64,000 nucleotides of DNA from Mytilus edulis (GCF_963676685.1 NC_092353.1:50592001-50656000); one strand, 5' to 3'; counted from the stretch's first letter, positions 1 through 56,826 are shown. Program-made: numbers and translations. The notes: generated from the sequence alone by a model not told the origin.

Positions 1-1040
1 GAAATCCCATACCGCATAGTCAGCTATAAACAGTTCGAAATGCCAATTATAAAACAATTCAAACGAGAAAAGTAAATGATTTATGTACAAAATAAATGAA
101 GGAAAAACAAATATGCAACACAGCATAAAACGACAACCACTGGGTAACAGGCCAATAAACTTCCTGTGTCAAAACAATCAACACAGAAAATTCAACACCA
201 TTATATATTCAAAGATGTCCTGTTTTTTAACTTGTGGACAAAAGATGTATACAGAAGAAGATATAAAAGCCTTAAGGAAGTGATTACAAGAACCTTTACT
301 TATACATTGACCTACATCCGAATCAATTTAGACATTTTAATAAATACTTTTTATAGATATATAAAAATCAGGGTTTCCCAGTGTCATGTAAACATAAATA
401 CATACAAAAACTTCCTGTTTACATGGAGGTTGGAGAGCCATTAATTTAATGAGATGCTGCTTAAAAGGTTATCGTCATAGGGTAAGCATGAAAATCACAG
501 AACAACTTTTTTTTCAATTTAAGATTGTGTAGTCTTGATACATAATAAAACACAGTCTGAAAGCTGTTAATATTCGATCGGAGCTTAGAAGTTCGAAACG
601 GTTCACAATAAATATAACTTCGAAAGGAAAATCTAGATTCGTACAGGTTTAAGCCACAATTTCACACAAAACTTAGATAAACTACAATCCTACTTAACTT
701 TTGTAACTCTTATATTAACGTTCAAAATTGCATCTTGTAAATAACCGTATAATGTATGTGAACAAAATGTTTGTTTGTTTGTGTTTAAGCGTTATGTCAT
801 ATATATATTTACGGACTTTATAATTTGAGGAAGCCAGAGTACCTGATGGTAAAAAGGGGCGGCAAATTGCCAATGCTTTTCATTCAAGATAGAACTTCCA
901 ACCATAGAGTTGACAGTTTAGTAAACCACCAAGACTAGTCAGTATATCGCTAAGGGTCGAAGAACAATTGCGCTTTGCTTATACATGTACATTAATTTAA
1001 AAGATATGTTCCCATTTCCTTTTAGATTAAATGACATTAA

Positions 1041-4000
1041 ATGGTAATGGACGTAAGCGGTAACTTTACCATTTATTTGTCTGACGGTGGAGATGAAGAC
1101 GAAAGAAATAAATCGAAACGAATCATCGAACGCTTGGAAGATTCTAATATTGGAATTATATACGGAGACAGAGATTTTATACCCGGATGTATGATACTAG
1201 ACAACAAAAGAAATGCGGTTCTAAAGTCAGACTTAGTGGTGGTACTTTTGTCCGATAGCTTTATAGACTCGACTGAATGTGTTTATGATGTTGCTTTGGC
1301 AATTTGTCTAGAAAGACACATTATTATAATAGACAACAGAAAACTAAGAAGAATGCCACCATTATTAAATGAATTGCCAAAGATAAAAGGACGTACAAAC
1401 TTTGTCAAAGTGTTACAAAAGCTGAAACGAATGGTTGATGGGTATTATGCAGAAGGTAAGTTCTGTTTTAGACTTGTACCTTCTCTTTTAAAAAGGCTGT
1501 TTCAATTCCGAAAGGTTTTTAGATTTTTGTCTTTTCATAGTTTTGTGTATGCTTTTTATTGATTTTTCATCAATATATGCGACGATGTTGCTTGGAATGG
1601 ATTTGGATTACTTTTGTTTATGTCTATGTCTTGTTAAAAAACGCTTTTATTTTTGAATGGGTATATAGAATACACCTTATCGCTATTTATCGTAATTAAG
1701 ACAACTTCCTGTTTGGTTCAAACATTGCAACAACAAACGTCAACTGTTTCAAGTTAAGGAAAGAAATTGTATAGAAAGCAAACAATATATATATATATTA
1801 AAATCATAACAGTTTTTTGAAGCTTTTTATGATTGTTTAAAAATATTTTTTTATAAATAAAAAGGTCTATGCGTAATACATTGTTTAAACTGGGCCCCAG
1901 ATAGATGTCAAATGGGTGTAAAAGTTGTGTAATTTCAGATCTTATTCGGATTGGAGTAAAAAGCGATATGGTGTATTAGTTTAAATTCTTCGTATATTTT
2001 ATTCCGGCATGAAATATTTGCCACTGAACGTTAAGTACTATAGTAACCAACAATCAATCGTGTATTTTGTTCAAAATTTTAACAGAAAAAAAACAATCAA
2101 GGAATAGGAAAGACGATGCACAGGTATATATCAGGGAAGTGGAACGAACAGCTACTTTAGAAAATGAACAAGAATTTCAAAACCAGATTCTCAGACTCCA
2201 GGCTCAACTGACGCAAACTCAAAGAGACAAGAAAATAGCTAAACACATTGCGATTGTAGATGGAGATAGAGCATTTAACAACTATCACCATGAACAAACA
2301 ATACGATACCAGTTGGAGAAAAGAATCAGAGAAATGGAGAACCATATACAGACACTCAGCAGAGAAAACGTTATGCTGAAGCAGCCAGTGGTAAGTTCCC
2401 AACACAGGTCACAGAAATAAATTCTTAAATTTCATGATAAACCATTATATTAAGAATTGCATGCTTCTTTTTGTAAATTTATTGGGGTGTCAAAACGTTG
2501 ACCGAAGTACTAAAAATGTACGCACGGTCAACGCTTTTACAACCCTATAAAGTTACAAAAAGAAGCATTCAATACTTATAATTACATTTTTTAGCTATGA
2601 TCGTGAAAACACGAATTTTATTATTTAATTCACCTGTGCACTTTATTGTTGGAGCACGTGTTATCATGAGTGAAAAGTTGTATTGAGCAATGCAACTGCT
2701 TACGGAATAACACGTGATGTGCAGTTAGCCAATCAGAATAAAATATTATAATGAAACATACATCTAATGTAATTTTTGAGGTATATAGGAAAACATTTCT
2801 GAGACGAAGTCTTCTCGTTTGTATTTTGTTATGTTATGTCATAGCTTTGTTTGCTTTACTTCAATTGCATATACAAAAAGAAGGCACACGTTTAATGTAT
2901 TGGTGTGTTTTACTTCTAGGTTTCTGTCAGTCCAATGGTTGAGAGAAATTCACAGCAAACTCCATTTCAAGAAATTCAAAAACAGATAAATCAGGTTTTG
3001 ATTGAAATATCAAATCTGAGTCATAAGAATGTAGACAACGTGGATACGAATACTACATTCTACAGAATGCCGACTGAATTGAAATGTTTTTGTCAAAAAT
3101 ATGAGGAAATGATTGGTATGTATACAAATTTATAAACCGTTTAAGGCCTGAGGGACGCCGATTTGATTTTTTGAGCGTGAGCCTCAGAGGGGAGAGGCAG
3201 GATGATTTTGTAAATGAATGTTTGGCCTGGTAAGAACTGAAATAGATGAATAATCAATTGGAAGATAAAAAATGCCTAGTAACTTTAGTTTAGAGGTTTT
3301 ATTTGAGATGTCGTAGTGATGATGTTAAGGACAAGGAACAATATATGGGCTATGTTGCAGATTTTGAAAAAAATTGCACACATCCTTTGCTCATTGAACT
3401 GCCTGAAAATCGAAAGAAAAAGTTGCATTAATCTAGTTTACTTTCTGAACATGACTGAGTACTCTCAGATCTGTTCATTGTGGCTTTTTGTGTCGGGATG
3501 TATAAGTACCCGGCCACGTCCACTTATATTTTTGTCCATCTGATGAGTAAAGCCCTTTTTAACTGATTTTTATAGTTCGTTCTTATGTTGTACTGTTATG
3601 CCACTGTCCCAGGTTAGGGAGAGGGTTGGGATCCCGCTAACATGTTTAACCCCGCCACATTATTTATGTATGTGCCTGTCCCAAGTCAGGAGCCTGTATA
3701 TTCAGTGGTTGTCGTTTGTTTATGTGTTACATATTTGTTTTTCGTTCATTTATTTACATAAATAAGGCCGTTGGTTTTCTCGTTTGAATTGTTTTACATT
3801 GTCTTATCGGGGCCTTTTATAGCTAACTATGCGGTATGGGCTTTGCTCATTGTTGAAGGCCGTACGGTGACCTATAGTTGTTAATGTCTGTGTCATTTTG
3901 GTCTTTTGTGGATAGTTGTCTCATTGGCAATCATACCACATCTTCTTTTTTATATGATTGAAATCTTTCAAAATAGGTGAACATTTGTAAAGAAATCACA

Positions 4001-5609
4001 TAAAATCTTCGAAAAGAGTTCTTTAATTTGTATTTAAATCATCAAATACATGTATCCAATTTCAAATCCATTGTTGTTTTTTTTTTTGTTTTTTTTTTTT
4101 TTTTTAAGCTGTAATAAATGATCTAAATAAACTTTGTCACCCAGGTCCAAATATTTGTCGACTGGGACGATTACTGCATTTATCAAATCACCAGATAGAA
4201 AAGGTAGAAGAATGCAGGGAGAATGGTTATGTTGAAATGTTTTGGCAGACGATAAAGTTTTGGCAGTCAAATGAAAACTCAGACGAAAGCTTTGTGACGT
4301 TACTGAATGTATTAGAAGACATTGGTGTTGATATCGGAGGTAACTTTAATACTTATATGAATTATTGAGGCTGCACAAGAACGCAAAAAAGACTGCAACT
4401 ACCTTTGCAGAAAAAGTCCAACAACAGTTACAGACAATATAGTTTATAGTGCTTATATAAAATCAATCACTGATAAAAGAAAACTAAAAGAAATAAAGTA
4501 AATTCTACAAAGTTAGTGATGAGTATGACAATTTCAAACACGTTTGATGATACAATTTAAAAGCTTAACAACTTTTTCAGAAATTAAATAATATACACGA
4601 CTGTTTGATATCTATTTAGGAAAGCCAATGTCAAAGACTGAAGTGAGAATACTCCATGAGAAGATTCCTTTCATCTTGAACAATATTTACCAAGTAAATG
4701 ATTTGATACCATACCTGATATCTCAGCACGTGTTAACACACGTGACTGAGATGTTTATCAGAGAACCAAGGAATAAGGAGGAAAGACTATTGCGTTTAAT
4801 CAATGTTCTCACAACAAAACACTATGGAATTAAGGCCCTTTGTAATGCCCTTACCCATACAAACCAGGAATTTATAGCAGACGAGATATCACGTGAGTAT
4901 ATATTGACACATGACAAAGTAGGCAAATGTAGGTCTGCTTTTACTACCTCAGTTATACTTCGGAGTAAGCTGGTCCCCCGTTCCAATTAAACTCCGCACC
5001 GAAGCGTAGCAATAAGTGAATACAACATGGGACCAGTATGCTTATGTGCTCTTACATTTAGGGATGGATCTAGGATTTTTTATAAGGGGGCGTAATTCCA
5101 TTAAATCGGGACGAAGAAAAAAAACGACAAGCGTAGCGAGTTTAAATTTGTTTTGAAGATTTTATGCTGAAAAACATTACGACCTCTTCCCCCTTTGAAT
5201 CATCTCTTAAACTGAGAATGTTTTCGATAAGATAATTTATAAGCTATAACCGTGAAGAAATATTGATAACATTAATAATAATATTGCATGTGAGCTTAAA
5301 AGATCTTAAAGTTATCATTTTATTGTAGGTTCTATGCCAAATATACCGACAAGCCGTTTCCCTGTTGAATTAACTGATGAAAGCTGCGATTCTCAATGGA
5401 GTTCAGATGAATCTAGACTACAAGTAGCACGTGTTGCACCAATTACCGCTACAGTAAATTCAGTAAAAGCATATGCGCACCTTGAAGAAAAACATCAGTG
5501 TCAGAATGAAGACTTAAATAACACATGTGTCGATGGAATTGAGCAATTAATTAAAAAGGTCTCTAAGGAAAAAACTATAAAATCCCGTAGGGGTTGTAGT
5601 ATTCAATAG
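1041..5609 (+). CDS. TIR - coiled-coil - Death domain - CARD protein with C-terminal CaaX box; 6 coding exons: 1041-1455, 2086-2390, 2920-3115, 4109-4339, 4620-4892, 5329-5609 (1701 nt, 566 aa)
   Basis: All five introns are GT..AG with matching phases (1,0,1,1,1), and the joined length is a multiple of 3. Exon 1 is a TIR (FTIYLS, GDRDFIPG BB loop, VVVLLSDSFIDSTECVYD). Exon 2 is a Q/E/K-rich coiled coil. Exon 4 translates to AVINDLNKLCHPGPNICRLGRLLHLSNHQIEKVEECRENGYVEMFWQTIKFWQSNENSDESFVTLLNVLEDIG (Death-domain pattern). Exon 5 is CARD-like (LIPYLISQHVLT..ERLLRLINVLTTKHYGIKALCNAL..NQEFIADEI). The protein ends KSRRGCSIQ*. Confidence 0.88.
3476..3955 (+). repeat. Abundant dispersed repeat; relatives at 1-140(-), 17222-17365, 37755-37935, 57223-57500, 58555-58660(-), 60050-60310(-)
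   Basis: Shared GTGCCTGTCCCAAGTCAGGAGCC and GAAGGCCGTACGGTGACCTATA blocks. A sister family lies at about 9530-9800 and 21990-22270. Confidence 0.75.
4109..4339 (+). CDS. Death-domain exon (exon 4 of the TIR gene), absent from the supplied ORF track
   Basis: Poly-T tract followed by AG at 4107-4108, 77 open codons, GGAG|GTAACT donor. Motifs RLGRLL-L---QIE-VE and W---E----SF-TLL-VLEDIG are typical of Death domains. Confidence 0.85.
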
Positions 5610-7119
5610 TACAAGTACCAACCACAAATATTGTACATAGTAGTCAGAGAGCTCATTGAGGTCTTGCATTTTAAAGGACAAATTTCAAACAGTTGAGAAA
5701 CTGTTTAGCCTGCCAAAGCCAAAGATAACACAAAAAAAGTGAGAAAAAAAACTTTAGAAAACTTTTATGTTTTTCTTTTGCATACATATGGAATAAGTTG
5801 ACTTAAGGAGTGAAAGATTGCAAATTAATACAGTTAAATGATAAATACTTTTATATGAGTAGTCTTGAAAACATGAAGCATTTGTTGTAAATGATATGTT
5901 TTTGTATAAATTATTATGTGCTGTAATTGTGATATTTACTTGACTTTTTGAGGGTTACCGTGAATTAAGATAAAGTTATTGTATACAAAAATACAGGTTT
6001 TTTTATATATTTATTGCAAGTATGAGTGTTTATGAATATTTTGGGATGCGGGATATATATAAAAAGTTGGATGTCGGTTATTAGAGTAAATAGAAACAGG
6101 GATCTGGGAAAGAAAGGGAGAACGTGTGTAGTATACTGTTGTTTTTACTTTTTAACTGTTCTCTTTCATTTGCGTTGTAAGTTTAATTTATTTTTGACTT
6201 GAGTCACTGCCTAGCTGCCTTGTCTGGCAAAACAGTTGTTAGACGTCAGAACAAACGCGGACTACTTCGACTTGTGAGTTTGAAAGCCCGTTTGTCTTCT
6301 TTCTGCTCCCCATGTAAGTTAGTCTACAGCGAAGAACTATTTTCGCCGGGTTGCTTATATTTATAAACATTTTTTTTTCTGAAGAAAAATGTCACAATCA
6401 CTATTTGTTTACTGACTATTTCAAGAAGTGTAATTTTTCACTGGCGTCTTATAGGTATTCAACAATTGACCCCAAATCTTAAAAAAATAACCTTGAAGAA
6501 GTGACAGTTGTGGGTACGATCGTAAACTTCATACACTAGTCTATGGATTTATGATTATTGCCCAATTTCACATAAGAAAATTACACTTTAAAAGAAATCA
6601 TTGATCACTAAAACTGATATTACACCCTTGACTCGATTTCACTTCCCTTTTTAAAAAAAGTTCAAGTATTAAAAGTGAATGGAGTGTAAGTAAATATAGA
6701 ATAACTGTCCTACTGTTTAAATTTTTATGATGTTGTATAATTTATAAAGTTGGTATACATACTTTGATTTATATTAACGCTTCGTGTGGGTGTCATAGAA
6801 CAAATATTGGTCTCTCCTGTTCGTTAATATAATAATAAAAATGCACAAGGAAACTTGAAACGTATACTCCACGTCTATCGATACACACTAAATAATATTT
6901 GGTCCGTTTTAAATCATATTCCCAACTTATGGATCTTCCCTGAAATATTTGCCAATGGACGTCAAGCAACAAACAATCAGTCAATAATATTATATTTCTT
7001 ATCCATATCGCGGCGTGTCATAACAAATTATGTTTTATTATATTGGTTTGTCTGTCATATGCTCCACGAAAACATTAAATGAAAGTTTCTATATTTAATG
7101 CCAGCAATGAAAACCCCTC

Positions 7120-8818: not shown

Positions 8819-9307
8819 TTATTCATAGTATAACATGTAGCAAGTTGCCACGATCACACTATCCTCGAATGGTACAGTCACAGATGTATGTGTATCTGTA
8901 GAATCATTCCATAGACATCTACTTCCAACAGAAATTGTAGCGTTTTCTTGAACAATAGTTACGTGTACAATTATTCTAAAACGACTGTTAAAATACTCCG
9001 CTTTGATTCGTTGTCTGATAGCATCACTCAGTCGCGTGCAGAGAAAACCACGCCCCTCTTTATCCAAGAAATCTTCCTCCTCTCCGGAAACCACCTCCAG
9101 TATTGTATTGTTCATGATACTGTTGACAATTTTGGTTGCGATAGTGTCATCTGGTGCTATCCTATATGTATTCTCATAACGAATTTTAGGTTCTTCGCTC
9201 GTTTCAGTTCGGCTGCTGTCATCTTCTCGCTTAAAGATGTGAGGAGACTTGATAACGTTTCTCACTAAATTAGAAAATCTACTAAGTCTTGGGAGACGCG
9301 TTTCCAT
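8819..9307 (-). CDS. Tctex-1 domain dynein light chain (TCTEX1D/DYNLT5-like), copy 1, intronless CDS, 162 aa
   Basis: YENTYRIAP motif, RFRIIVHVTIVQ, GSRCLWNDSTDTH, C-terminal ATCYMLYYE. Confidence 0.9.
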   Translation of the reverse strand: METRLPRLSRFSNLVRNVIKSPHIFKREDDSSRTETSEEPKIRYENTYRIAPDDTIATKIVNSIMNNTILEVVSGEEEDFLDKEGRGFLCTRLSDAIRQRIKAEYFNSRFRIIVHVTIVQENATISVGSRCLWNDSTDTHTSVTVPFEDSVIVATCYMLYYE

Positions 9308-12350: not shown

Positions 12351-12765
12351 ATCTATCGTCAATACCAAACTCACATAAAGAGTAAAAACATAAAAGTGTC
12401 TACCGTCAATACCAAACTCACATAACCAGTAAAAACATATAAGTGTCTACCGTCAATACCAAACTCGCATTAAGAGTGAACACATAAAAGTGTCTACCGT
12501 CAATACCAAACTCCCATAAGGAGTAAAAACATAAAAGTGTCTTCCGTCAATACCAAACTCACATTAAGAGTAAAAACATATAAGTGTTTACCGTCAATAC
12601 CAAACTCACATAAGGAGTAAAAAACATAAAAGTGTCTACCGTCAATACCAAACTCACATAAGGAGAAAAAGCATAAAAGTGTCTTCCGTCAATACCAAAC
12701 TCACATTAAGAGTAAAAACATATAAGTGTCTACCGTCAATAACAGACTCGCATAAAGAGTAAAAA
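12351..12765. repeat. Minisatellite, about 47-bp unit, about 9 copies
   Basis: CCGTCAATACCAAACTCACATA..AGTAAAAACATA.AAGTGTCT recurs at about 47-bp spacing. Confidence 0.92.
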
Positions 12766-14083: not shown

Positions 14084-14584
14084 TTATTCAAAATAAACAG
14101 CATAACAAGTTGATACAATATAACTATCACCAAAAGGTATGGAAACTGTCATGTGATTGTCTGTGTTATCGTTCCATAAACATCTACTTCCGATGGAAAA
14201 AGTGGCAAAATCTTGAACAATAGTTACATGAATTATAAATCTGTACCTAGTATTAGCATATTCCGTTTTTATTCGATGCTTGATGTCGTCTGTTAGTTTC
14301 GCACACAAATGACCCCTGCCCTCTGACTCGAGAAAATCGTCGTCTTCACCGGCGATGAGTTCTTTAATTGCCTGTCTCATAGTGCCTTGGATAGTATTTT
14401 CCGAGAGTAAATTGTCAGGATCCATTTTGTATGTATTTTCCCATTTGAATTTATTAAGTTCGTCCGTAGTTTCAGATCGACAGTTGCTTTCATCGTCTCG
14501 ACGTCCTGACGGTGTTTGACTCTTGGTGGCAGCACGAAGCTGAGCTGCTCTAGCTGTTGGTCTCTGTAGATATGCTTTATCCAT
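14084..14584 (-). CDS. Tctex-1 domain dynein light chain, copy 2, intronless CDS, 166 aa
   Basis: WENTYKMDP, RYRFIIHVTIVQ, GSRCLWNDNTDN, TCYAVYFE; closest to copy 1. Confidence 0.9.
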   Translation of the reverse strand: MDKAYLQRPTARAAQLRAATKSQTPSGRRDDESNCRSETTDELNKFKWENTYKMDPDNLLSENTIQGTMRQAIKELIAGEDDDFLESEGRGHLCAKLTDDIKHRIKTEYANTRYRFIIHVTIVQDFATFSIGSRCLWNDNTDNHMTVSIPFGDSYIVSTCYAVYFE

Positions 14585-19602: not shown

Positions 19603-20157
19603 TCATTCTAAATAAATCCCATAACATGCAGCTACGGCAAACACAGTTTTATTTTTAAAAGTAACACATGCAAAATTATCGTTCTTTTCATCCCATATAC
19701 AGCGGCTACCTATCTGTACTGCTTGCTCAGAATTCTCTCCAACTACAACTTGTACAACATATCTGTACCGTTTCCATGGAAACTCCTTAGCTCGTTCTTT
19801 TATTAAGGATGACAAGTTTGCGGCAACTGTCGGGCATATTTTCCCGTTATAGTCCGTCTCGGTTAACTGTTTGTCTAATATTTCTTTCATTGCTCTTTCC
19901 ATCTGTTTGCTAGAAAACTTATAATCCTCACATGGATTCAGTTGGAATGTATTTTCAAGTCTGACATGTTCATGAAAATATTTCCCTCTGTCATGATCAG
20001 AGCTTTCAGATTTACTATCGTTTCCTTTGTGATCCCTTAAAGTATGCCCATGGGCTTTTGTAAGCCTGCCCGGCACAGTCAGGTTCTGTCCATGCCCAGG
20101 TATATGACCACCGCCATGTCCGTGTGTTCTCCGTATCCTCCTAGAATCCATCGCCAT
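19603..20157 (-). CDS. Tctex-1 domain dynein light chain, copy 3, intronless CDS, 184 aa from the first ATG, His/Gly-rich N-terminus
   Basis: LENTFQLNP, FPWKRYRYVVQVVVGE, GSRCIWDEKNDNFA, AACYGIYLE. The first ATG is at 20157; the track start is a TTG. Confidence 0.9.
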   Translation of the reverse strand: MAMDSRRIRRTHGHGGGHIPGHGQNLTVPGRLTKAHGHTLRDHKGNDSKSESSDHDRGKYFHEHVRLENTFQLNPCEDYKFSSKQMERAMKEILDKQLTETDYNGKICPTVAANLSSLIKERAKEFPWKRYRYVVQVVVGENSEQAVQIGSRCIWDEKNDNFACVTFKNKTVFAVAACYGIYLE

Positions 20158-21448
20158 GCTTTTCCGCAATAAACAAATACTTAGTCAATATTCACTTTAT
20201 AACGGAAACCAGAATGAACTTCACAATTAGATAATTTTATCTAAAAGCGTGTCAAACATTGATTAAATCCATCCATTCACCGTACCTACGTTATAAATAT
20301 CTGTGGATTACTGAGAATTCTACCCGATAAATATCCTATGGAAAAGCTGGCGTACAATCATCGATTCTGATCCTCAATTCGTGATCACAGCCTTCTATTT
20401 GACGATACAAATGGGTTTTATGAAGTATTTATGAATGACAGCCTTAATTATATTGACTTAGTTGAAATGTATACATTATCTTATTTTACAGATTGTTTCT
20501 TACTGTTAAATCTCATTTTCTACTCAGGTAAAGAGATAATTATAAGAATATAGATTTTTTTCGTGTGTGTACAATGACAATTGTTATTTTCTGAATTGGC
20601 TAGTAATTAATAAACACGACTTTTTCTGCTTTTTTTCATTGCAATACGTCATTCAACTACATTTGTATTAAAGTTTCATAAATATGTGGGTTTTGTTGAT
20701 TAAATGGTTCAATAATGCACATTTCCGTTTATAGTGTGTAATGGTTCGCTTGAAGCTGCATGCATGCCTGAAACAAATACTTTGAACTTATTGCAGACTA
20801 AGGTCTCTTATCATTGCACAAAAAATGACACCAAGGTCTTCTCTCTTTTCTTCCAGTTTTCTATGCACTGATGCATTTAGACTTATTTCCAGGTTTGTAC
20901 TGACATGAGCAACACCGGATGGTGCCCCATATGGAGCAGGATCTGTCTACCCTTCCGGAACTCCTAGCTGAGATCACCTCCCGTTTTGGCGGGATTCGTG
21001 TTGCTTAGTATTTAATTTTGTATGTTGTGTTTTATGTACTTCTGTTTGTCTGTTTCTTTTTTAAACAATTGCGTTGTCAGTTTGTTTTCTCGACTTTTTC
21101 TTTTGAATGTCCCTCTGGTATCTTCGTCTCTCTTTTATAAATAATATCATACTTCTTTAATACTGTCACGTGATGTAACCAGATCAGTTTGATGAAATCG
21201 ACACGTATTTAATAGGTGTTCAATAGGGGTGAATCTAATAACTTCAAATTTTGACAGAAGGGATCTAGGAGCTTAGAGAGTTTATCCTTTTTTATCGATC
21301 ATCATTTTATTAATATTTTACGTTATTAAAGTAGCTTAAAGAAAAATGGATGTGTTGCGACAACCACTAGTACACGGCCTTTAATCTACCACTGTCGAAA
21401 CTGCAACATCATGCTGTTTCTGTCATACGATTGGACCATTGAACCAGT

Positions 21449-25591: not shown

Positions 25592-26170
25592 TCAATCCAA
25601 ATACACTGCAAAGCATGTTGCCATGGCAAATATTGTTTTGTTCTCATATGAGGCAGTAGCAAAAGTGTCCCGATGTTCATCCCATATACATCTGCTGCCA
25701 ACCTTTATTGATGTATTCGTGTTCTGTCCTAGGATAACATGAACTATGAACCTATACCGTTTCCATGGGAATATTTTGGCTCTATCTTTGATCTGATTGG
25801 ATACGGTATGAACGAGAGTATTGCACGTGACGGAGTCGTAAGGTGCGTCGCCGATTACTTCTTCCATAATCTCTTGCATTGCTTTTTCCATCTTAGAACA
25901 TGAAAATAGTTCGTCGTCCTTTGGTTCTAGACGGAAAGTATTTTCGTACTTAACTCCACGCTTGATTGACCTCAGCATGTCCATACTATCTAGGTCAGAC
26001 GACATTGACCTTTCTCTTGTCTGTGCATGGATACTCAGTTTGCTTCCTGTCCCTCTTGCTCTCGAGTTTTTACCAGTAGACTTTTTCCAGTCTGATTTTG
26101 CTACAGATTTTGATCCTCTCCGTTCTAAAACGGTGTCCATTATATTGTCTAGTACTTTGTGATTCGACAT
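25592..26170 (-). CDS. Tctex-1 domain dynein light chain, copy 4, intronless CDS, probably 192 aa (start MSNHKV)
   Basis: YENTFRLEP, FPWKRYRFIVHVILGQ, GSRCIWDEHRDTFA, ATCFAVYLD. The ATG at 26170 has AAAAAAATG context and gives a length similar to the paralogues. Confidence 0.88.
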   Translation of the reverse strand: MSNHKVLDNIMDTVLERRGSKSVAKSDWKKSTGKNSRARGTGSKLSIHAQTRERSMSSDLDSMDMLRSIKRGVKYENTFRLEPKDDELFSCSKMEKAMQEIMEEVIGDAPYDSVTCNTLVHTVSNQIKDRAKIFPWKRYRFIVHVILGQNTNTSIKVGSRCIWDEHRDTFATASYENKTIFAMATCFAVYLD

Positions 26171-27132
26171 TTTTTTCTCACTTTTCAATATTTTAAAACT
26201 TACTAGTATGTGGAAGAGACTAAATCCTAGTAAAATCTCCACAAAGGGATAGAATTCAGTGTGATCCAACAAATAAAAAATATAATCTACACTAAAACGA
26301 ACATGACTATAATGACGCACAAAATCGCAGATAAAAAGTTGACCAAAAGTGTTTATTTGTTGTCTAAACAATATTAGAAGAATATGCATTGATCCATTCC
26401 AGTAAGTTTGACTTGTGTTTTAAATTAGTTACCAATACAGATGTAATCTGAAACCGTGCCATTTTGTTTTTTCCTGTAAACAATTTTAAGGTCTTTTTAT
26501 AGTAACCAATTACACAAGCAGTTTCTTGTAACAGAGCATCATCAAGTTCATATTTAATTATATAATGATATCATAAGAAACAGAAAAATATCGTCTGGTC
26601 AATAACCAACAAGTATTTTCAGGAACGAAAGATGTTCTTGGGAAAAACAGTTCTGATAAAAATTAGAAATTATGATTTCGATCGATAGAAGTACTGATAG
26701 ATTTTCTTAAGTTACAAAGAGGTAACATTGAGCCATACAAATTATGTTTCAATTTTTAAAGTGAGAATTTAACATTTCTAGTAACATTATCTTGGATGGA
26801 ATGATCCACGTTTGCGATCAATATGATCAAACCATAGTATGTCTCCCTTATGTTTTTCATACACAATGTTTCTCTTAGTTTCTCACGTAAGGGTTAAAAA
26901 AAAATGATTATTGTCACATTGTTATCAACGTTTCACTAAGGAAGAGGTAGAGAGGAGTACTCAATCCGCGGCAGCTCACGAGACTTGGATTACTGAGTCA
27001 AAGATTTTGTATTCATGAGCTCAATGAATATTTCAGCACCTCACTAACTATAATTTGGGAGATAAATATGAATCATTTAGCATACTGAAATATTTGTGAA
27101 CCTGCACAACGCATTTGAGGATATAATTTACA

Positions 27133-47263: not shown

Positions 47264-49210
47264 ATGGACGTTACATATAGGAGCACCATATTGCTAGTGG
47301 TTATATTCTTTGCAGCAGTAAATTCTAAACCTGGAATTGGTAGGTCATATTTGAACATTTTAAAAAATTCATATGATTGTGCAAAACGCTATTTTTATTC
47401 TTCCTGGCTATAATTTTATTTGATTACTTCCTTATTTGAAGGTTATCGTTTTAAATTTACCATATCAATTTCAAACTGTTAAAATAATATACTGCTATTC
47501 GTTTAATTTCTATATGTAAACTTGGATACAACATATTTTGTATGCGGTTAAAAGGGTGTATTTCCAACAAGAATACTATTTGAATATTGATCTTAAACAA
47601 ATAAATAACATACCAATTCTCTTAAAATTCAGTTGTTAACTCGTTTTTGGAATTTCAACAACTCTGGTTCGTTTAAAAAGATAATTTCATGTGATTTTTA
47701 TCAGTAAAATTTAAAATCGCAGAAATAGAATTCTGTTTTAATAGAGCATGGATAAATAAAATTATGGGGAAATAAATGCCTATGTTTTTAAAATACAAGT
47801 TTATGATAAAAAAAAATCCGGAGGAAAAGGGAAGGTTAACAACATTTCCGTAAAAACGAGGATGTGCTATCCCGTTTGAAATAAGTTTTCTACAGGTACA
47901 ACCAAACTTCATAACAAAATCTTTATATCTATGGAAAAATCTAGTAAAGGTTTTAAGTAATTTATGGTCACGATATCCCTGGTTTAATAATTTACCAGTA
48001 ATACAAAGATTGCGTTCGTTAAAATCAAAAACGTCACAACAGACACGGGCATATAGCGAACGAGCTGTGAAATATAAACACCGTAAGATGGTGCCAATGG
48101 AACATCACCATCTAAAAATGGAAAATTAACAATAGGTAACGAAAAATCGTCTCTTTTGTCGTAAATTTTAGTGTGGAGTTTCCCGTTTAAAACCGAAATA
48201 TCTAAATCCAGGAAAGGATAGTTATTTCCGAATAAATTTGATTTAAGTATAACTGTTGATGTAAATGTCCTTTGGTTTTGTGAGTCTTTGATTGCTCCTT
48301 GTTTTTGTTTATTATTGTCTTATCATAAAACAAATAGATAAAAAATGAGTGTGTATAGGTCAGAAAAGTATATAAAAAATAACAAATATGTAGACATGTT
48401 TAGTGAAAGTGTTTTTGGTACTATTTTTATGCATTGAAAAATATAAAGATTGAAATATTTTAATGTAAAGACTTAAACAAAACTAGAGTAATAAAATACT
48501 TGTATAAAGAAGGGACAAAAAGACACAGCGATCACTGCTTAAGACTTGTTTTATCGATTTTCGGTTAACCAATCTGTTGAGATTACAATCATCTTCAGTA
48601 TATTTTGTATTTTTCAGTGCCGAGGAATGTCAATGCATTTGAAGCAGCAACTGTCAGTCAGACAACAACCGACCAAAACACATCAGCTAGTTCTGCAACA
48701 ACTACAAGAAACTCAAACATTACTGGTCAGACAACCGAACGCTCTAATGTTACCATCCAAACAACGATAACTCCAAATATCACGAAAGGACCGACAACGG
48801 AACATTCTAACATTACTGTTGAGCCAACAACTCAAAATTCAAATATTACGATGGAACCCGTAACTAAGGCATCAAACGTGACACTGGAACCAACAACGAA
48901 AAACCCAAATGTTACAGTGGAACCAACAACTACAAACCCTAATGTTACAGTAGAACCAACAACGAAAAACCCAAATATTACAGTAGAAACATCAACTCAC
49001 CCAAGTAATATGACTACACCAATGTCAACTCCAAAAACGAAACCACATCCAACAACACATGCAATGCCGACCACTACAAAGAAGTATAAATTTAATGGTG
49101 CAAGTTTTGTAGGAGGAATAGTTTTGGGAGTCGGAGTATCAGTTGTTATAATAATGATTGTTTACTTTTTGAAATGCAGAAAAAGTGATGCCGGTTACGA
49201 TAGAATGTGA
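47264..49210 (+). CDS. CD164/porimin (MGC-24 family)-like type I sialomucin, copy A; exons 47264-47339 and 48618-49210 (222 aa)
   Basis: Signal-peptide exon MDVTYRSTILLVVIFFAAVNS, phase-1 intron, Thr/Pro/Asn mucin stalk, family signature FNGASFVGGIVLG (CD164 has FDAASFIGGIVL), TM helix, tail GYDRM (YxxPhi). Confidence 0.88.
47835..48300 (-). mobile_element. Penelope-like element RT fragment in the mucin A intron
   Basis: Minus strand reads YDKRDDFSLPIVNFPFLDGDVPLAPSYGVYISQLVRYARVC..KLLNQGY; absent from paralogue B. Confidence 0.75.
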
Positions 49211-55800: not shown

Positions 55801-56826
55801 CTCCCTGTAGTGTTAGGTACCACCTTAAGGTATATTTTGTATCTTTCAGCAACGAAGCATGTCAATGACATTGGAGCCACAGCTGTTAGTCAGACAATAA
55901 CCGACCAAAACACATCAGCTAGTTCTATAGCGACTACAAGAGATTCAAACGTTACTGGTCAGACAACCGAACACTCCAATGTTACCATTCAAACAACGAT
56001 AACTCCAAATATTACGAAAGAACCGACAACGGAACATTCTAACATTACTGTAGAGCCAACAACTCCAAATTCAAATATTACAATGGAACCCGTAACAAAA
56101 GCATCAAACGTGACACTGAAACCAACAACGAAAACCCCAAATGTTACAGTAGAACCAACAACCACAAATCAAAATGCTACGGTAGAACCAACAACCACAC
56201 ACCCAAATGTGACAGTAGAACCAACAACCACACACCCAAATGTTACTGTAGAACCAACTACTAAAAACCCCAATGTGACAGTAGAACCAACAACCACAAA
56301 CCCAAATGTTACAGTAGAACCAACAACTAAAAACCCAAATGTTACAGTAGAACCAACAACCACACACCCAAATGTTACTGTAGAACCAACAACTACAAAC
56401 CCAAATGTTACAGTAGAACCAACAACGAAAAACCCAAATGTTACAGTAGAACCAACAACGAAAAACCCAAATGTTACAGTAGAACCAACAACGAAAAACC
56501 CAAATGTAACGGTAGAACCATCAACCACACACCCAAATGTTACTGTAGAACCAACAACCACAAACCCTAATGTTACAGTAGAACCAACAACTACAAAACC
56601 AAATATTACAGTAGAACCGTCAACTCACCCAAGTAATATGTCTACACCAATGACGAAACCACATCCAACAACACATGCAATATCGACCACTACAAAAAAG
56701 TATAAATTTAATGGTGCAAGTTTTGTAGGAGGAATAGTTTTGGGAGTCGGAGTATCAGTTGTTATACTAATGATTGTTTACTTTTTGAAATGCAGAAAAA
56801 AGGCTGCCGGTTACGATAGATTGTGA
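52865..56826 (+). CDS. CD164/porimin-like sialomucin, copy B; exons 52865-52940 and 55850-56826 (350 aa)
   Basis: Near-identical paralogue of copy A with an expanded 33-bp repeat; same TM signature; tail GYDRL. Confidence 0.88.
53036..53482. mobile_element. Fold-back MITE (same family as 34394-34839) in the mucin B intron
   Basis: About 220-bp inverted arms; absent from the paralogous mucin A intron. Confidence 0.88.
53829..54408. mobile_element. Kolobok-like non-autonomous element (AG..CT termini, TTAA-like target)
   Basis: TAAA|AGCAGTAGGT ... ACCTACTCCT|TTAA. Empty site in copy A (TCAGTAAAATTTAAAATCGC at about 47701). An internally deleted inverted copy is at about 54528-54775 and a partial copy at about 50660-50880. 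Confidence 0.7.
55552..55824. mobile_element. Kolobok-like MITE, TTAA TSD
   Basis: TTAA|GGTGGTACCCAACAC ... GTGTTAGGTACCACC|TTAA; inverted partial copy at about 58680-58871. Confidence 0.8.
56107..56634 (+). repeat. Coding minisatellite, 33-bp unit (NVTVEPTTxxP), about 16 units
   Basis: Read directly from the translated ORF; every unit starts with an N-x-T sequon. Confidence 0.95.

Follow-up and report, generated by a model that had tools for sequence, protein, structure and literature searches.

A 64,000-nucleotide stretch of Mytilus edulis DNA (GCF_963676685.1 NC_092353.1:50592001-50656000; hereafter the window) raises the question of whether one gene encodes, in a single chain, a TIR domain, a coiled coil, a Death domain (DD) and a CARD, and what such a protein would do. 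A sequence-only reading of the window had spliced five open reading frames and one unlisted exon into a 566-residue protein and proposed it as a candidate new platform for innate immunity or cell death. By sequence inspection, the gene occupies positions 1041-5609 of the plus strand and comprises six coding exons with compatible phases, in which every exon border has a GT donor or an AG acceptor. The exon translations match exactly a 554-residue M. edulis RefSeq entry annotated as "uncharacterized protein" (XP_071135203.1, P0020). Searches of the window were run exon by exon, while the full-length product was taken from this database protein. The neighbouring genes are a Tctex-1 array and a CD164-like gene, and neither gives a functional context.

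The TIR–DD–CARD gene is expressed in Mytilus edulis. The joints 1455/2086, 2390/2920, 4339/4620 and 4892/5329 are present in transcript contigs from three public runs of three studies, 3115/4145 is the sole joint between exons 3 and 4 among the joints listed, and all five junctions are represented in spliced contigs across the three studies. In particular, exons 1-2-3-4 lie together on a single contig of 1053 nt (X3, record 15), and overlapping contigs join exons 4-5 and exons 5-6, arguing against the assignment of the exons to separate transcripts. The three informative runs are only presumed to be RNA, for which their spliced contigs argue. Read depth is 50-170 over exons versus 0-4 over non-repeat intron bins. 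In eleven further runs the fraction of words present is ~0.33, near the exon share of 0.36. A true RNA-seq run labelled as a sister species (X21) yielded no exon reads in the 6% of the run sampled and is uninformative.

The transcripts also define the ends of the gene and the start of exon 4. The first coding exon begins with a 5′ UTR (1026-1040, plus strand) preceded by an acceptor AG at 1024-1025, and an in-frame TAA at 1038-1040 lies directly 5′ of the ATG at 1041. Contig matches begin at 1025 or 1033, with 79-211 extra letters that map outside the locus (records 2 and 9); the gene has one or more non-coding exons upstream of 1026. The 3′ UTR (5610-5793, plus strand) is covered by a contig that extends from 5329 to 5793 (X3, record 19). 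The exon 4 acceptor used in transcripts is cacccag/G at 4145. The site proposed earlier, ttaag/C at 4109, was rejected: it is a weak AAG acceptor, lies 36 nt too far upstream, and is missing from both the listed transcript joint and RefSeq. By exact substring comparison, P0020 contains the translation of 4147-4338, not that of 4111-4338. The unlisted exon of the sequence-only reading therefore exists and is in phase, but it starts at 4145, so that the product has 554 rather than 566 residues; since the 36-nt shift keeps the frame, the domains are read as before.

Coding exon 1 (1041-1455, plus strand) contains the start codon and a complete TIR domain at residues ~9-134. Pfam TIR (PF01582) scores 32.2 bits in a scan of exon 1, against a cut-off of 21.3, and a phmmer search of the PDB with exon 1 retrieves the TLR15/TLR2 TIR at E 3.5e-7 and MyD88 at E 6e-3. 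The AF2 model of the domain is a five-strand alpha/beta fold (strands 9-15, 37-41, 65-70, 93-98 and 114-116) with five helices, and VIA aligns it over 121-125 residues to the Hydra TRR-2 TIR (Z 14.3) and the MyD88 TIR (Z 14.0). Specifically, the box 2 motif of the BB loop is present as RDFIPG, with its conserved proline, and aligns position by position with RDFIPG in the TLR2 TIR and with RDFKPG in the TIR chain of TLR15/TLR2 (PDB 7ylf). The profile, the predicted fold and the structural comparison all bear out the TIR assignment, and the domain classes, by sequence, with the TLR/MyD88 type. The RDFIPG motif is missing in the oyster relatives, whose TIR domains show 14-22% identity and match Pfam TIR_2 (PF13676) at E 1e-4; because these domains are so divergent, a TIR function common to the whole mussel-oyster family is uncertain.

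Coding exon 2 (2086-2390, plus strand) encodes a heptad-repeat coiled coil at residues 140-240, which AF2 models as long helices at 145-196 and 201-234; Pfam gives weak leucine-zipper-type matches and nothing else. The coiled coil is predicted to form a parallel, in-register homodimer with an ipSAE of 0.50, against 0.00 for the best of three controls, with partner pLDDT of 85-86 and 100% agreement of contacts between runs. Among solved structures, 21 of 30 homo-pairs and none of 23 single-chain proteins reach this ipSAE mark; the calibration is drawn mostly from microbial proteins, and in silico pairing may be predicted for any amphipathic helix. Oligomerization through the coiled coil, as had been proposed, is thus supported as a predicted self-pairing. 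The region is gapped in oyster orthologues, and the coiled coil appears to be a Mytilus-specific insertion; as it is missing from those orthologues, it does not define the family.

The Death domain is shared between coding exon 3 (2920-3115, plus strand; joints 2390/2920 and 3115/4145), which encodes a linker helix and helix 1 of the domain, and coding exon 4 (4145-4339, plus strand), which encodes the remainder. In the full-length model the domain lies at residues ~292-366, with helices across 292-364, and the helix at 292-315 bridges the junction of exons 3 and 4. Exon 4 alone scores 27.9 bits with Pfam Death (PF00531; cut-off 22.6), and the M. trossulus ortholog (P0002) scores 25.6 bits. 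A family profile searched against the PDB retrieves the Death domains of FADD (E 1.3e-7) and RIPK1 (E 2.6e-7), and no MyD88 or IRAK Death domain at E up to 10. These searches bear out the Death domain and place it, by profile, closest to FADD/RIPK1 and not to MyD88/IRAK; the IRAK link inferred in the sequence-only reading is accordingly not one that the sequence suggests.

The CARD is encoded entirely by coding exon 5 (4620-4892, plus strand), a 273-nt cassette of phase 1-1. Pfam CARD (PF00619) gives 20.5 bits for the M. edulis protein (E 4.9e-4), under the cut-off of 23.9, and 24.2-31.4 bits, above the cut-off, for four relatives (P0003, P0005, P0007 and P0012). The AF2 model of exon 5 alone has a pLDDT of 96.4 and six helices, including a kinked helix 1 split into 5-13 and 15-21. 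Foldseek superposes this model on the Apaf-1 CARD with a TM score of 0.85 and an rmsd of 1.6 Å, nearly all of its best 50 rows being CARDs and the exceptions a few designed proteins modelled on one; VIA gives Z 15.3 to the same domain. The CARD profile matches mainly CARDs in the PDB (BCL10, NOD1, Apaf-1 and CED-4), with BCL10 and NOD1 at about E 1e-3, together with a few designed proteins and chance rows. The structural matches and the four relatives bear out the CARD call, and exons 4 and 5 both encode death-fold domains, as judged from the Pfam score of the former and the six-helix model of the latter. Furthermore, VIA aligns residues 297-469 to the tandem death-fold of MDA5 (Z 13.2).

Within Mytilus, the CARD (91-98%) and the TIR domain (93-95%) are the best-conserved parts. 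The CARD is under strong purifying selection, and its exon differs from that of an inverted paralogue by eight synonymous and no non-synonymous changes. The exon is skipped in RefSeq and GenBank models: the M. edulis RefSeq isoform X2 (P0031, 463 aa) lacks it, and one M. galloprovincialis model has no CARD. The skipping joint 4339/5329 was not found among the transcript joints listed.

Coding exon 6 (5329-5609, plus strand; joint 4892/5329 found in three runs) encodes a Ser/Thr-rich tail that includes a polybasic stretch, and it carries the stop codon TAG. The tail (residues 467-554) is modelled by AF2 as disordered, with pLDDT <31. At its end, KKVSKEKTIKSRRG precedes the CaaX box Cys-Ser-Ile-Gln (5595-5606, plus strand), a predicted prenylation (farnesylation) signal by its sequence motif. 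Tails are otherwise only 15-21% identical between relatives, yet the CaaX box is conserved over two bivalve orders: it reads CSIQ in four Mytilus sequences, CSLS, CVIL, CVLS and CMIS in oysters, and CVLM in Saccostrea cucullata, and the cysteine at −4 is kept in ten aligned sequences from Mytilus, Crassostrea and Saccostrea that end in such a box.

Taken together, the contigs, profiles and folds support one transcript and one protein in the order TIR, coiled coil, Death domain, CARD, and Pfam scans of the protein find no enzymatic domain. AF2 models the full-length protein poorly on the whole (pLDDT 59); with this model, Foldseek returns only TIR and nucleoside deoxyribosyltransferase-fold matches, and VIA returns TIR and CARD matches. 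The gene is not new as such. A product of 552-554 residues is predicted independently in four Mytilus species. Database entries for M. edulis, M. trossulus, M. californianus and M. galloprovincialis call it "uncharacterized protein" or "TIR domain-containing protein", and relatives are present in oysters and the pearl oyster. The TIR–DD–CARD–CaaX layout recurs in oysters without the coiled coil, and, within M. edulis, the oyster protein matches the window gene and the inverted copy of it best. In the pearl oyster, model P0010 can be aligned across TIR, DD and CARD, but it gives no Pfam hit and has no CaaX box at its end. On this distribution, the unit dates back at least to the pteriomorph bivalves. 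A search of 1.84 billion representatives with the CARD exon gave 19 matches, of which all traced ones are pteriomorph bivalves, while a homologue search with the family alignment found nothing beyond Mytilus sequences.

A near-identical inverted paralogue (at least 28 kb, 95-100% identical) lies 380 kb away; transposons inserted in introns 3 and 4 distinguish the two copies. Paralogues with a coiled coil, DD and CARD but no TIR occur on another chromosome (contig C8), in M. coruscus and in a scallop. These paralogues, the inverted copy, the CaaX box and the CARD cassette exon are additions to the earlier reading of the gene, of which the single spliced gene itself stands, on its splice borders, phases, contigs and RefSeq match.

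Comparison with known systems shows both likenesses and differences. Like MyD88, it combines one TIR with one Death domain, keeps the BB-loop proline and would be a soluble adaptor without enzymatic parts, and the nearest ESM-Atlas cluster for the whole mussel protein is MyD88 (score 0.75, a lead only). However, MyD88 has an N-terminal Death domain, an intermediate domain and a C-terminal TIR, whereas the mussel TIR (9-134) precedes the Death domain (~292-366), which matches FADD/RIPK1, and the protein adds a CARD, a coiled coil and a CaaX signal; it is not a MyD88. With CRADD/RAIDD, the caspase-2 adaptor, it shares one Death domain adjoining one CARD, but CRADD has the CARD first and no other domains in ~200 residues, whereas the 554-residue mussel protein has the Death domain first and also a TIR, a coil and a tail with a lipid-anchor signal. 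It is therefore not classed as CRADD. TRAM is myristoylated, MAL/TIRAP binds PIP2 and MAVS is a tail-anchored CARD adaptor. By analogy with them, the mussel protein may hold a homotypic signalling domain at the membrane so that receptor clustering can seed assembly, although its predicted anchor, like that of Ras, combines a polybasic stretch with a prenyl group at the C-terminus. One combined CaaX/prenylation/TIR query of the open literature found no prenylated TIR adaptor.

Among bivalve and other invertebrate proteins, the ecTIR-DC families of Gerdol et al. 2017 are described as numerous and, in bivalves, uncharacterised (PMC6836662; PMC10279657), and family 6, for example, as having ARM repeats, a Death domain and two TIRs. 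As far as these second-hand descriptions go, they resemble the mussel protein in being cytosolic, in carrying TIR domains without belonging to the adaptors of vertebrates and, for some of them, in having a Death domain; the mussel protein differs in having no ARM repeats, a single N-terminal TIR, a CARD and a CaaX box, and no TIR–DD–CARD class appears in the descriptions. Likewise, the architecture was not found described in the open-access literature, and the compound names tried for it are absent from 8.4 million open papers, a scope outside which the Gerdol et al. 2017 inventory falls. Placozoan "MyD88-like" proteins with TIR and CARD (PMC6321704) and shuffled TIR/death-fold adaptors of amphioxus (PMC2575513) are comparable as independent invertebrate fusions of TIR to a CARD or other death-fold domain, but they belong to other phyla and have two-domain layouts, and the CARD-exon search of 1.84 billion representatives found no sequence relationship to them.

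The most likely function, which we infer with moderate confidence from domain homology, is that of a prenyl-anchored TLR adaptor that seeds death-fold assemblies. The CaaX cysteine would be farnesylated and, together with the basic residues, would tether the protein to the cytosolic face of a membrane. The TIR domain would dock, through the BB loop used by TLRs and MyD88, on activated TLRs, of which bivalves have very many, or on adaptor TIR assemblies. The coiled coil would pre-pair two chains, and the clustered Death domain and CARD would nucleate homotypic death-fold oligomers, recruiting FADD/RIPK-like partners through the former and, through the latter, proteins with a CARD of their own, for example CARD-caspases or BCL10-like proteins. 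If the CARD cassette is skipped, the resulting isoform would keep TIR, coil and DD but lose the CARD output. The coupling to both NF-kB and caspases that the sequence-only reading envisaged is inference only, from the domains present.

MyD88s, SARM and CARD-only proteins act as dampers of signalling, and the protein might likewise be a negative regulator or decoy, tethered to the membrane, that occupies TLR/MyD88 TIR sites or caps DD/CARD filaments. We consider this unlikely, while noting that the tested lineage-specific TIR adaptors of amphioxus (bbtTIRA/bbtTIRC) inhibit MyD88/TICAM signalling (PMC6043800), that an isoform without one output domain exists and that an enzymatic domain is absent. 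Two intact, well-conserved death-fold outputs and a dimerizing coil exceed what a decoy needs, and the strong purifying selection on the CARD also speaks against it, but the sequence data do not separate a decoy from an activator.

Somewhat less probable is a TLR-independent cell-death adaptor, in which a CRADD/RAIDD-like DD–CARD core would activate CARD-caspases at the membrane and the TIR would serve for self-assembly only. In the ESM-Atlas, residues 285-470 lie nearest to clusters of CRADD families (score 0.85-0.86, a lead only), the TIR-less paralogues have just such a core with a coiled coil, the CARD model is nearest to the CARDs of Apaf-1, CED-4 and caspase-9, and molluscs lack Apaf-1, with CRADD reported as their sole CARD activator (PMC11463336). 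Against this, the order of DD and CARD is the reverse of that in CRADD, the TIR sequence is nearest to receptor-type TLR TIRs and retains the BB loop for receptor-adaptor contacts, and the CARD profile is equally near to BCL10 and NOD1, which signal to NF-kB.

It is improbable that the TIR cleaves NAD+ in the manner of SARM1, plant or bacterial TIRs and that the protein executes cell death itself. The TIR model superposes on those of SARM1 (Z 13.6), plants (RPS4/RRS1, Z 14.3) and bacteria about as well as on that of MyD88, but its significant sequence matches are only TLR, MyD88 and Hydra TRR TIRs; a TIR-STING fusion reaches E 0.64, and SARM1 is absent among the matches listed. At the candidate NADase position, assigned by sequence alignment only, the Mytilus residue is Asp (VYDV), whereas TLR TIRs and the relatives from oysters and the pearl oyster carry Glu ("YEL"). 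TLR TIRs with that Glu are not known to cleave NAD+, so its presence or absence is no diagnostic sign. Finally, an annotation or assembly artefact merging neighbouring genes or haplotypes is largely refuted and has a very small probability, since, although the inverted copy could be a retained haplotig, contigs connect all six exons, the same product is predicted independently in four species and the copies differ in their intronic insertions.

Returning to the prenyl-anchored adaptor, a more far-reaching version, which we hold to be doubtful, is that in pteriomorph bivalves, which lack Apaf-1 and reportedly have no CARD activator but CRADD, the farnesyl-anchored TIR–DD–CARD protein is a direct "TLR-to-caspase" platform, in which clustering of receptor TIRs at the membrane would seed a DD/CARD filament and activate CARD-caspases, the FADD/RIPK1-like Death domain would lead to NF-kB or extrinsic death, and CARD splicing would pick the output. 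If true, one protein would be a shortcut for tasks of vertebrate MyD88, FADD, RIPK and ASC or Apaf-1.

No TLR repertoires are known to be larger than those of bivalves, which also have TIR proteins in the cytosol by the hundreds, and to our knowledge almost none of these has an established function. The TIR–DD–CARD gene offers a tractable entry point, being conserved from mussel to oyster and expressed, and combining a splice switch and a predicted lipid anchor with three well-defined homotypic modules. Should it connect TLRs directly with death-fold partners, it would reveal how pathogen sensing is wired to cell death in an animal without Apaf-1 or inflammasome NLRs, and a prenyl anchor, if real, would join the known ways of positioning innate adaptors. 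Even as one more shuffled adaptor of minor effect, it would remain a clean and verified case of shuffled domains in a farmed species.

The gene lies on the + strand and is composed of six coding exons: E1 (1041–1455), E2 (2086–2390), E3 (2920–3115), E5 (4620–4892) and E6 (5329–5609), placed by reading the sequence, and E4 (4145–4339), placed by the joints 3115/4145 and 4339/4620. E1 carries the TIR, E2 the coiled coil, E3 and E4 the Death domain, E5 the CARD, and E6 the tail. The donors of E1–E5 read, in order, GTAAGT, GTAAGT, GTATGT, GTAACT and GTGAGT, the acceptors are AG throughout, and the exon end phases (1, 0, 1, 1, 1) are mutually compatible. An in-frame TAA stands directly 5′ of the ATG at 1041. 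The acceptor AG at 1024–1025 implies that E1 follows an intron and that one or more untranslated exons lie upstream.

Sequencing contigs place all six exons in one transcript. In each of 14 small public runs, a fraction of 0.33–0.44 of the words sampled from 1000–5700 was found, the exon share of this interval being 0.36. Three of these runs, from three studies, were mapped onto window positions 1–5950; their RNA nature is a guess, and we take them as RNA because spliced contigs can arise from RNA alone. The three mapped runs show the joints 1455/2086, 2390/2920, 4339/4620 and 4892/5329, with GT..AG ends throughout, and the E3–E4 joint observed in the mapped contigs is 3115/4145. Depth is 50–170 on exons versus 0–4 in repeat-free intron bins. 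A single 1053-nt contig of run X3 spans E1–E2–E3–E4, while in run X2 one contig joins E4 and E5 and another joins E5 and E6, so that overlapping spliced contigs connect E1 through E6 and the exons do not belong to separate transcripts. Run X1 contains a transcript variant with six clustered changed letters at 1100–1107, in an acidic stretch just past the first TIR strand; it stems from either an allele or another copy. Two intronic segments, 2389–2786 (intron 2) and 3384–3980 (intron 3), are highly repeated, with a summed contig depth of up to ~390,000 in the mapped runs, and are probably SINE- or MITE-like transposons.

The sequence-only reading had proposed a six-exon, in-phase model for a protein of 566 aa, with E4 starting at 4109; exon order, phases and splice borders hold, but E4 starts at 4145. 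The 4145 acceptor (cacccag/G), whose pyrimidine tract is the long T-run 4068–4106, fits the consensus better than the 4109 site (ttaag/C), and the 12 extra residues of the 4109 start have no counterpart in any orthologue in the alignment. Furthermore, the translated exons are exact substrings of the RefSeq protein XP_071135203.1 (P0020, 554 aa) solely with the 4145 start, and the protein is therefore 554 aa long.

The TIR, predicted coiled coil, Death domain and CARD follow each other in the order claimed from sequence; the three domains are backed by Pfam, PDB profiles, AF2 models and a structural match of the CARD, with window searches run on one exon at a time. The TIR scores 32.2 bits in Pfam, and its closest solved relatives in a PDB search are receptor TIRs (TLR15/TLR2, E 3.5e-7; TLR1/6), followed by MyD88 (E 6e-3), with the BB-loop RDFIPG aligning exactly with the solved relatives. 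The AF2 model of the TIR (residues 9–134, pLDDT 70–87) superposes on the TIRs of Hydra TRR-2 (Z 14.3) and MyD88 (Z 14.0). AF2 models E2 as two long helices. For two copies of the E2 peptide, the predicted complex is a pair in parallel and in-register arrangement with a/d-type contacts, with an ipSAE of 0.50 (best of three controls, 0.00), partner pLDDT of 85–86 and 100% contact agreement between runs. In calibration, 21 of 30 solved homo-pairs attain the ipSAE mark, against none of 23 proteins whose solved structures are single chains; the complex prediction supports a putative pairing through the coiled coil.

The Death domain scores 27.9 bits in Pfam, and the family profile matches the Death domains of FADD (E 1.3e-7) and RIPK1 (E 2.6e-7) in PDB, where it found no MyD88 or IRAK Death domain. 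The CARD falls slightly under the Pfam cut-off in the window protein and exceeds it in four relatives, and the profile matches mainly CARDs in PDB. Modelled alone, E5 (pLDDT 96.4) shows a helix 1 broken in two, as is usual in CARDs, and resembles the Apaf-1 CARD (TM 0.85, rmsd 1.6 Å, Z 15.3). The tail, residues 467–554, is predicted to be disordered. Two short motifs lie in E6, at 5361–5378 and 5418–5462: PVELTD, a match to the TRAF6-binding consensus PxExx(acidic/aromatic) seen in Mytilus alone, and (Q/K)(V/I)A..(A/S)P, also discernible in oyster relatives; at this length, either motif may be a chance match.

Orthologues of 552–554 aa with 87–90% identity are found in M. trossulus, M. californianus and M. 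galloprovincialis, and within Mytilus the CARD (91–98%) and the TIR (93–95%) are the most conserved parts. Distant relatives occur in Crassostrea virginica (LOC111104650), Saccostrea echinata (LOC133185094), S. cucullata and Pinctada imbricata, with an identity of ~24% overall and 32–38% in the Death domain and CARD. In the M. edulis genome, the oyster protein is matched best by the window gene and its inverted copy. The family alignment shows the coiled-coil exon as an insertion confined to Mytilus. A CaaX box (CSIQ, CSLS, CVIL, CVLS, CMIS or CVLM) ends all full-length Mytilus and oyster members, despite a tail identity of only 15–21%. Ahead of the box stand basic residues in Mytilus and additional cysteines in oysters. 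Among TIR-bearing relatives, the exception is the Pinctada model P0010; the TIR-less relatives P0012 and P0015 likewise have no box. Coiled-coil–Death domain–CARD proteins without TIR are present in M. coruscus and the scallop Mizuhopecten, and contig C8 of M. edulis has two small groups of such paralogues, at 40894586–40935656 and 43169589–43181634, with about three and two copies. Exon by exon, these paralogues are 45–91% identical to M. coruscus CAC5355864.1, with stop codons in some matches. Beyond Pteriomorphia, family members were sought with a single 90-aa query.

The CARD is encoded as a cassette. E5 is 273 nt long with phases 1-1, so that skipping it keeps the frame; RefSeq isoform X2 (P0031, 463 aa) is the window protein minus E5, and the M. 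galloprovincialis model P0024 also has no CARD. The skipping joint 4339/5329 was not seen among the joints listed for the three mapped runs.

A second, inverted gene copy (P0030, 555 aa) lies at C10:50.21 Mb, 380 kb from the window gene, the window itself being C10:50592001–50656000. The copies are at least 99.7% identical in E1–E3 and 97–98% identical in E4–E6, with 8 synonymous and no non-synonymous differences in the CARD exon and 3 non-synonymous differences in E4, and introns 3 and 4 set them apart through insertions of transposon size. The stretch 3459–4108, in which the intron-3 repeat lies, exceeds its counterpart in the inverted copy by ~520 bp, while intron 4 of the inverted copy has ~490 bp extra. 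The duplication covers at least window 1–28189, which matches C10:50190001–50229999 on the same chromosome, inverted, over at least 28 kb at 95–100% identity and ~380 kb apart; either a true segmental duplication or haplotype retention could account for it. Besides the second TIR–DD–CARD gene, it carries a second Tctex-1 array. The array in the window comprises four tandem intronless ORFs on the − strand (8819–9307, 14084–14584, 19603–20169 and 25592–26389), each with a C-terminal Tctex-1 (dynein light chain) domain (E 1e-13 to 1e-25) and an N-terminal extension of varying length. A minisatellite with a period of ~47 bp occupies 12352–12765 and is matched by the inverted copy at many shifted offsets. 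Farther along the + strand are an ORF of the MGC-24/CD164 sialomucin family (48605–49210; PF05283, E 1.7e-10) and a 338-aa ORF with no Pfam match (55810–56826), overlapped by an opposite-strand 130-aa ORF.

Architecture, expression, conservation and the prediction of coil pairing come from the data; the most likely mechanism is extrapolated from the established roles of TIR, DD, CARD and CaaX modules elsewhere. The protein would be farnesylated and positioned at a membrane, its TLR-like TIR would enter receptor or adaptor TIR assemblies, and the coil would pair two chains beforehand. The clustered DD and CARD would then nucleate homotypic oligomers and recruit FADD/RIPK-like and CARD-bearing partners, and skipping of the CARD exon would take away one output. 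Alternatively, the protein may act as a damping decoy, in line with the inhibitory action of the lineage-specific amphioxus TIR adaptors tested so far (PMC6043800). It may also serve as a TLR-independent, CRADD-like death adaptor, molluscs having no Apaf-1 and CRADD being said to be the sole CARD activator there (PMC11463336). An NADase activity of the TIR is unlikely, because the domain is related in sequence to scaffolding TIRs and, in Mytilus, carries Asp where the ‘YEL’ glutamate stands.

The window protein is neither MyD88, from which it differs in its reversed domain order, its other type of Death domain and its added CARD, nor CRADD, from which it differs in its reversed order and extra parts. 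The names TIR-DD-CARD, TIR-DEATH-CARD, TIR-CARD and CARD-TIR are absent from 8.4 million open papers, a scope outside which the inventory of Gerdol et al. 2017 falls, and the papers listed by one search on CaaX, prenylation and TIR domains include none on a prenylated TIR adaptor. Cytosolic bivalve TIR proteins have repeatedly been called numerous and uncharacterised (PMC10279657; PMC4346834), and at least one other Death-plus-TIR class is catalogued, ecTIR-DC 6, which combines two TIRs with a Death domain and ARM repeats (PMC6836662). The window protein belongs with the TIR/death-fold adaptors and is not categorically new, and another shuffled adaptor in a bivalve is no great surprise for a specialist. 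Its conservation across orders, its predicted lipid anchor and its cassette CARD nevertheless make the gene a good experimental target.
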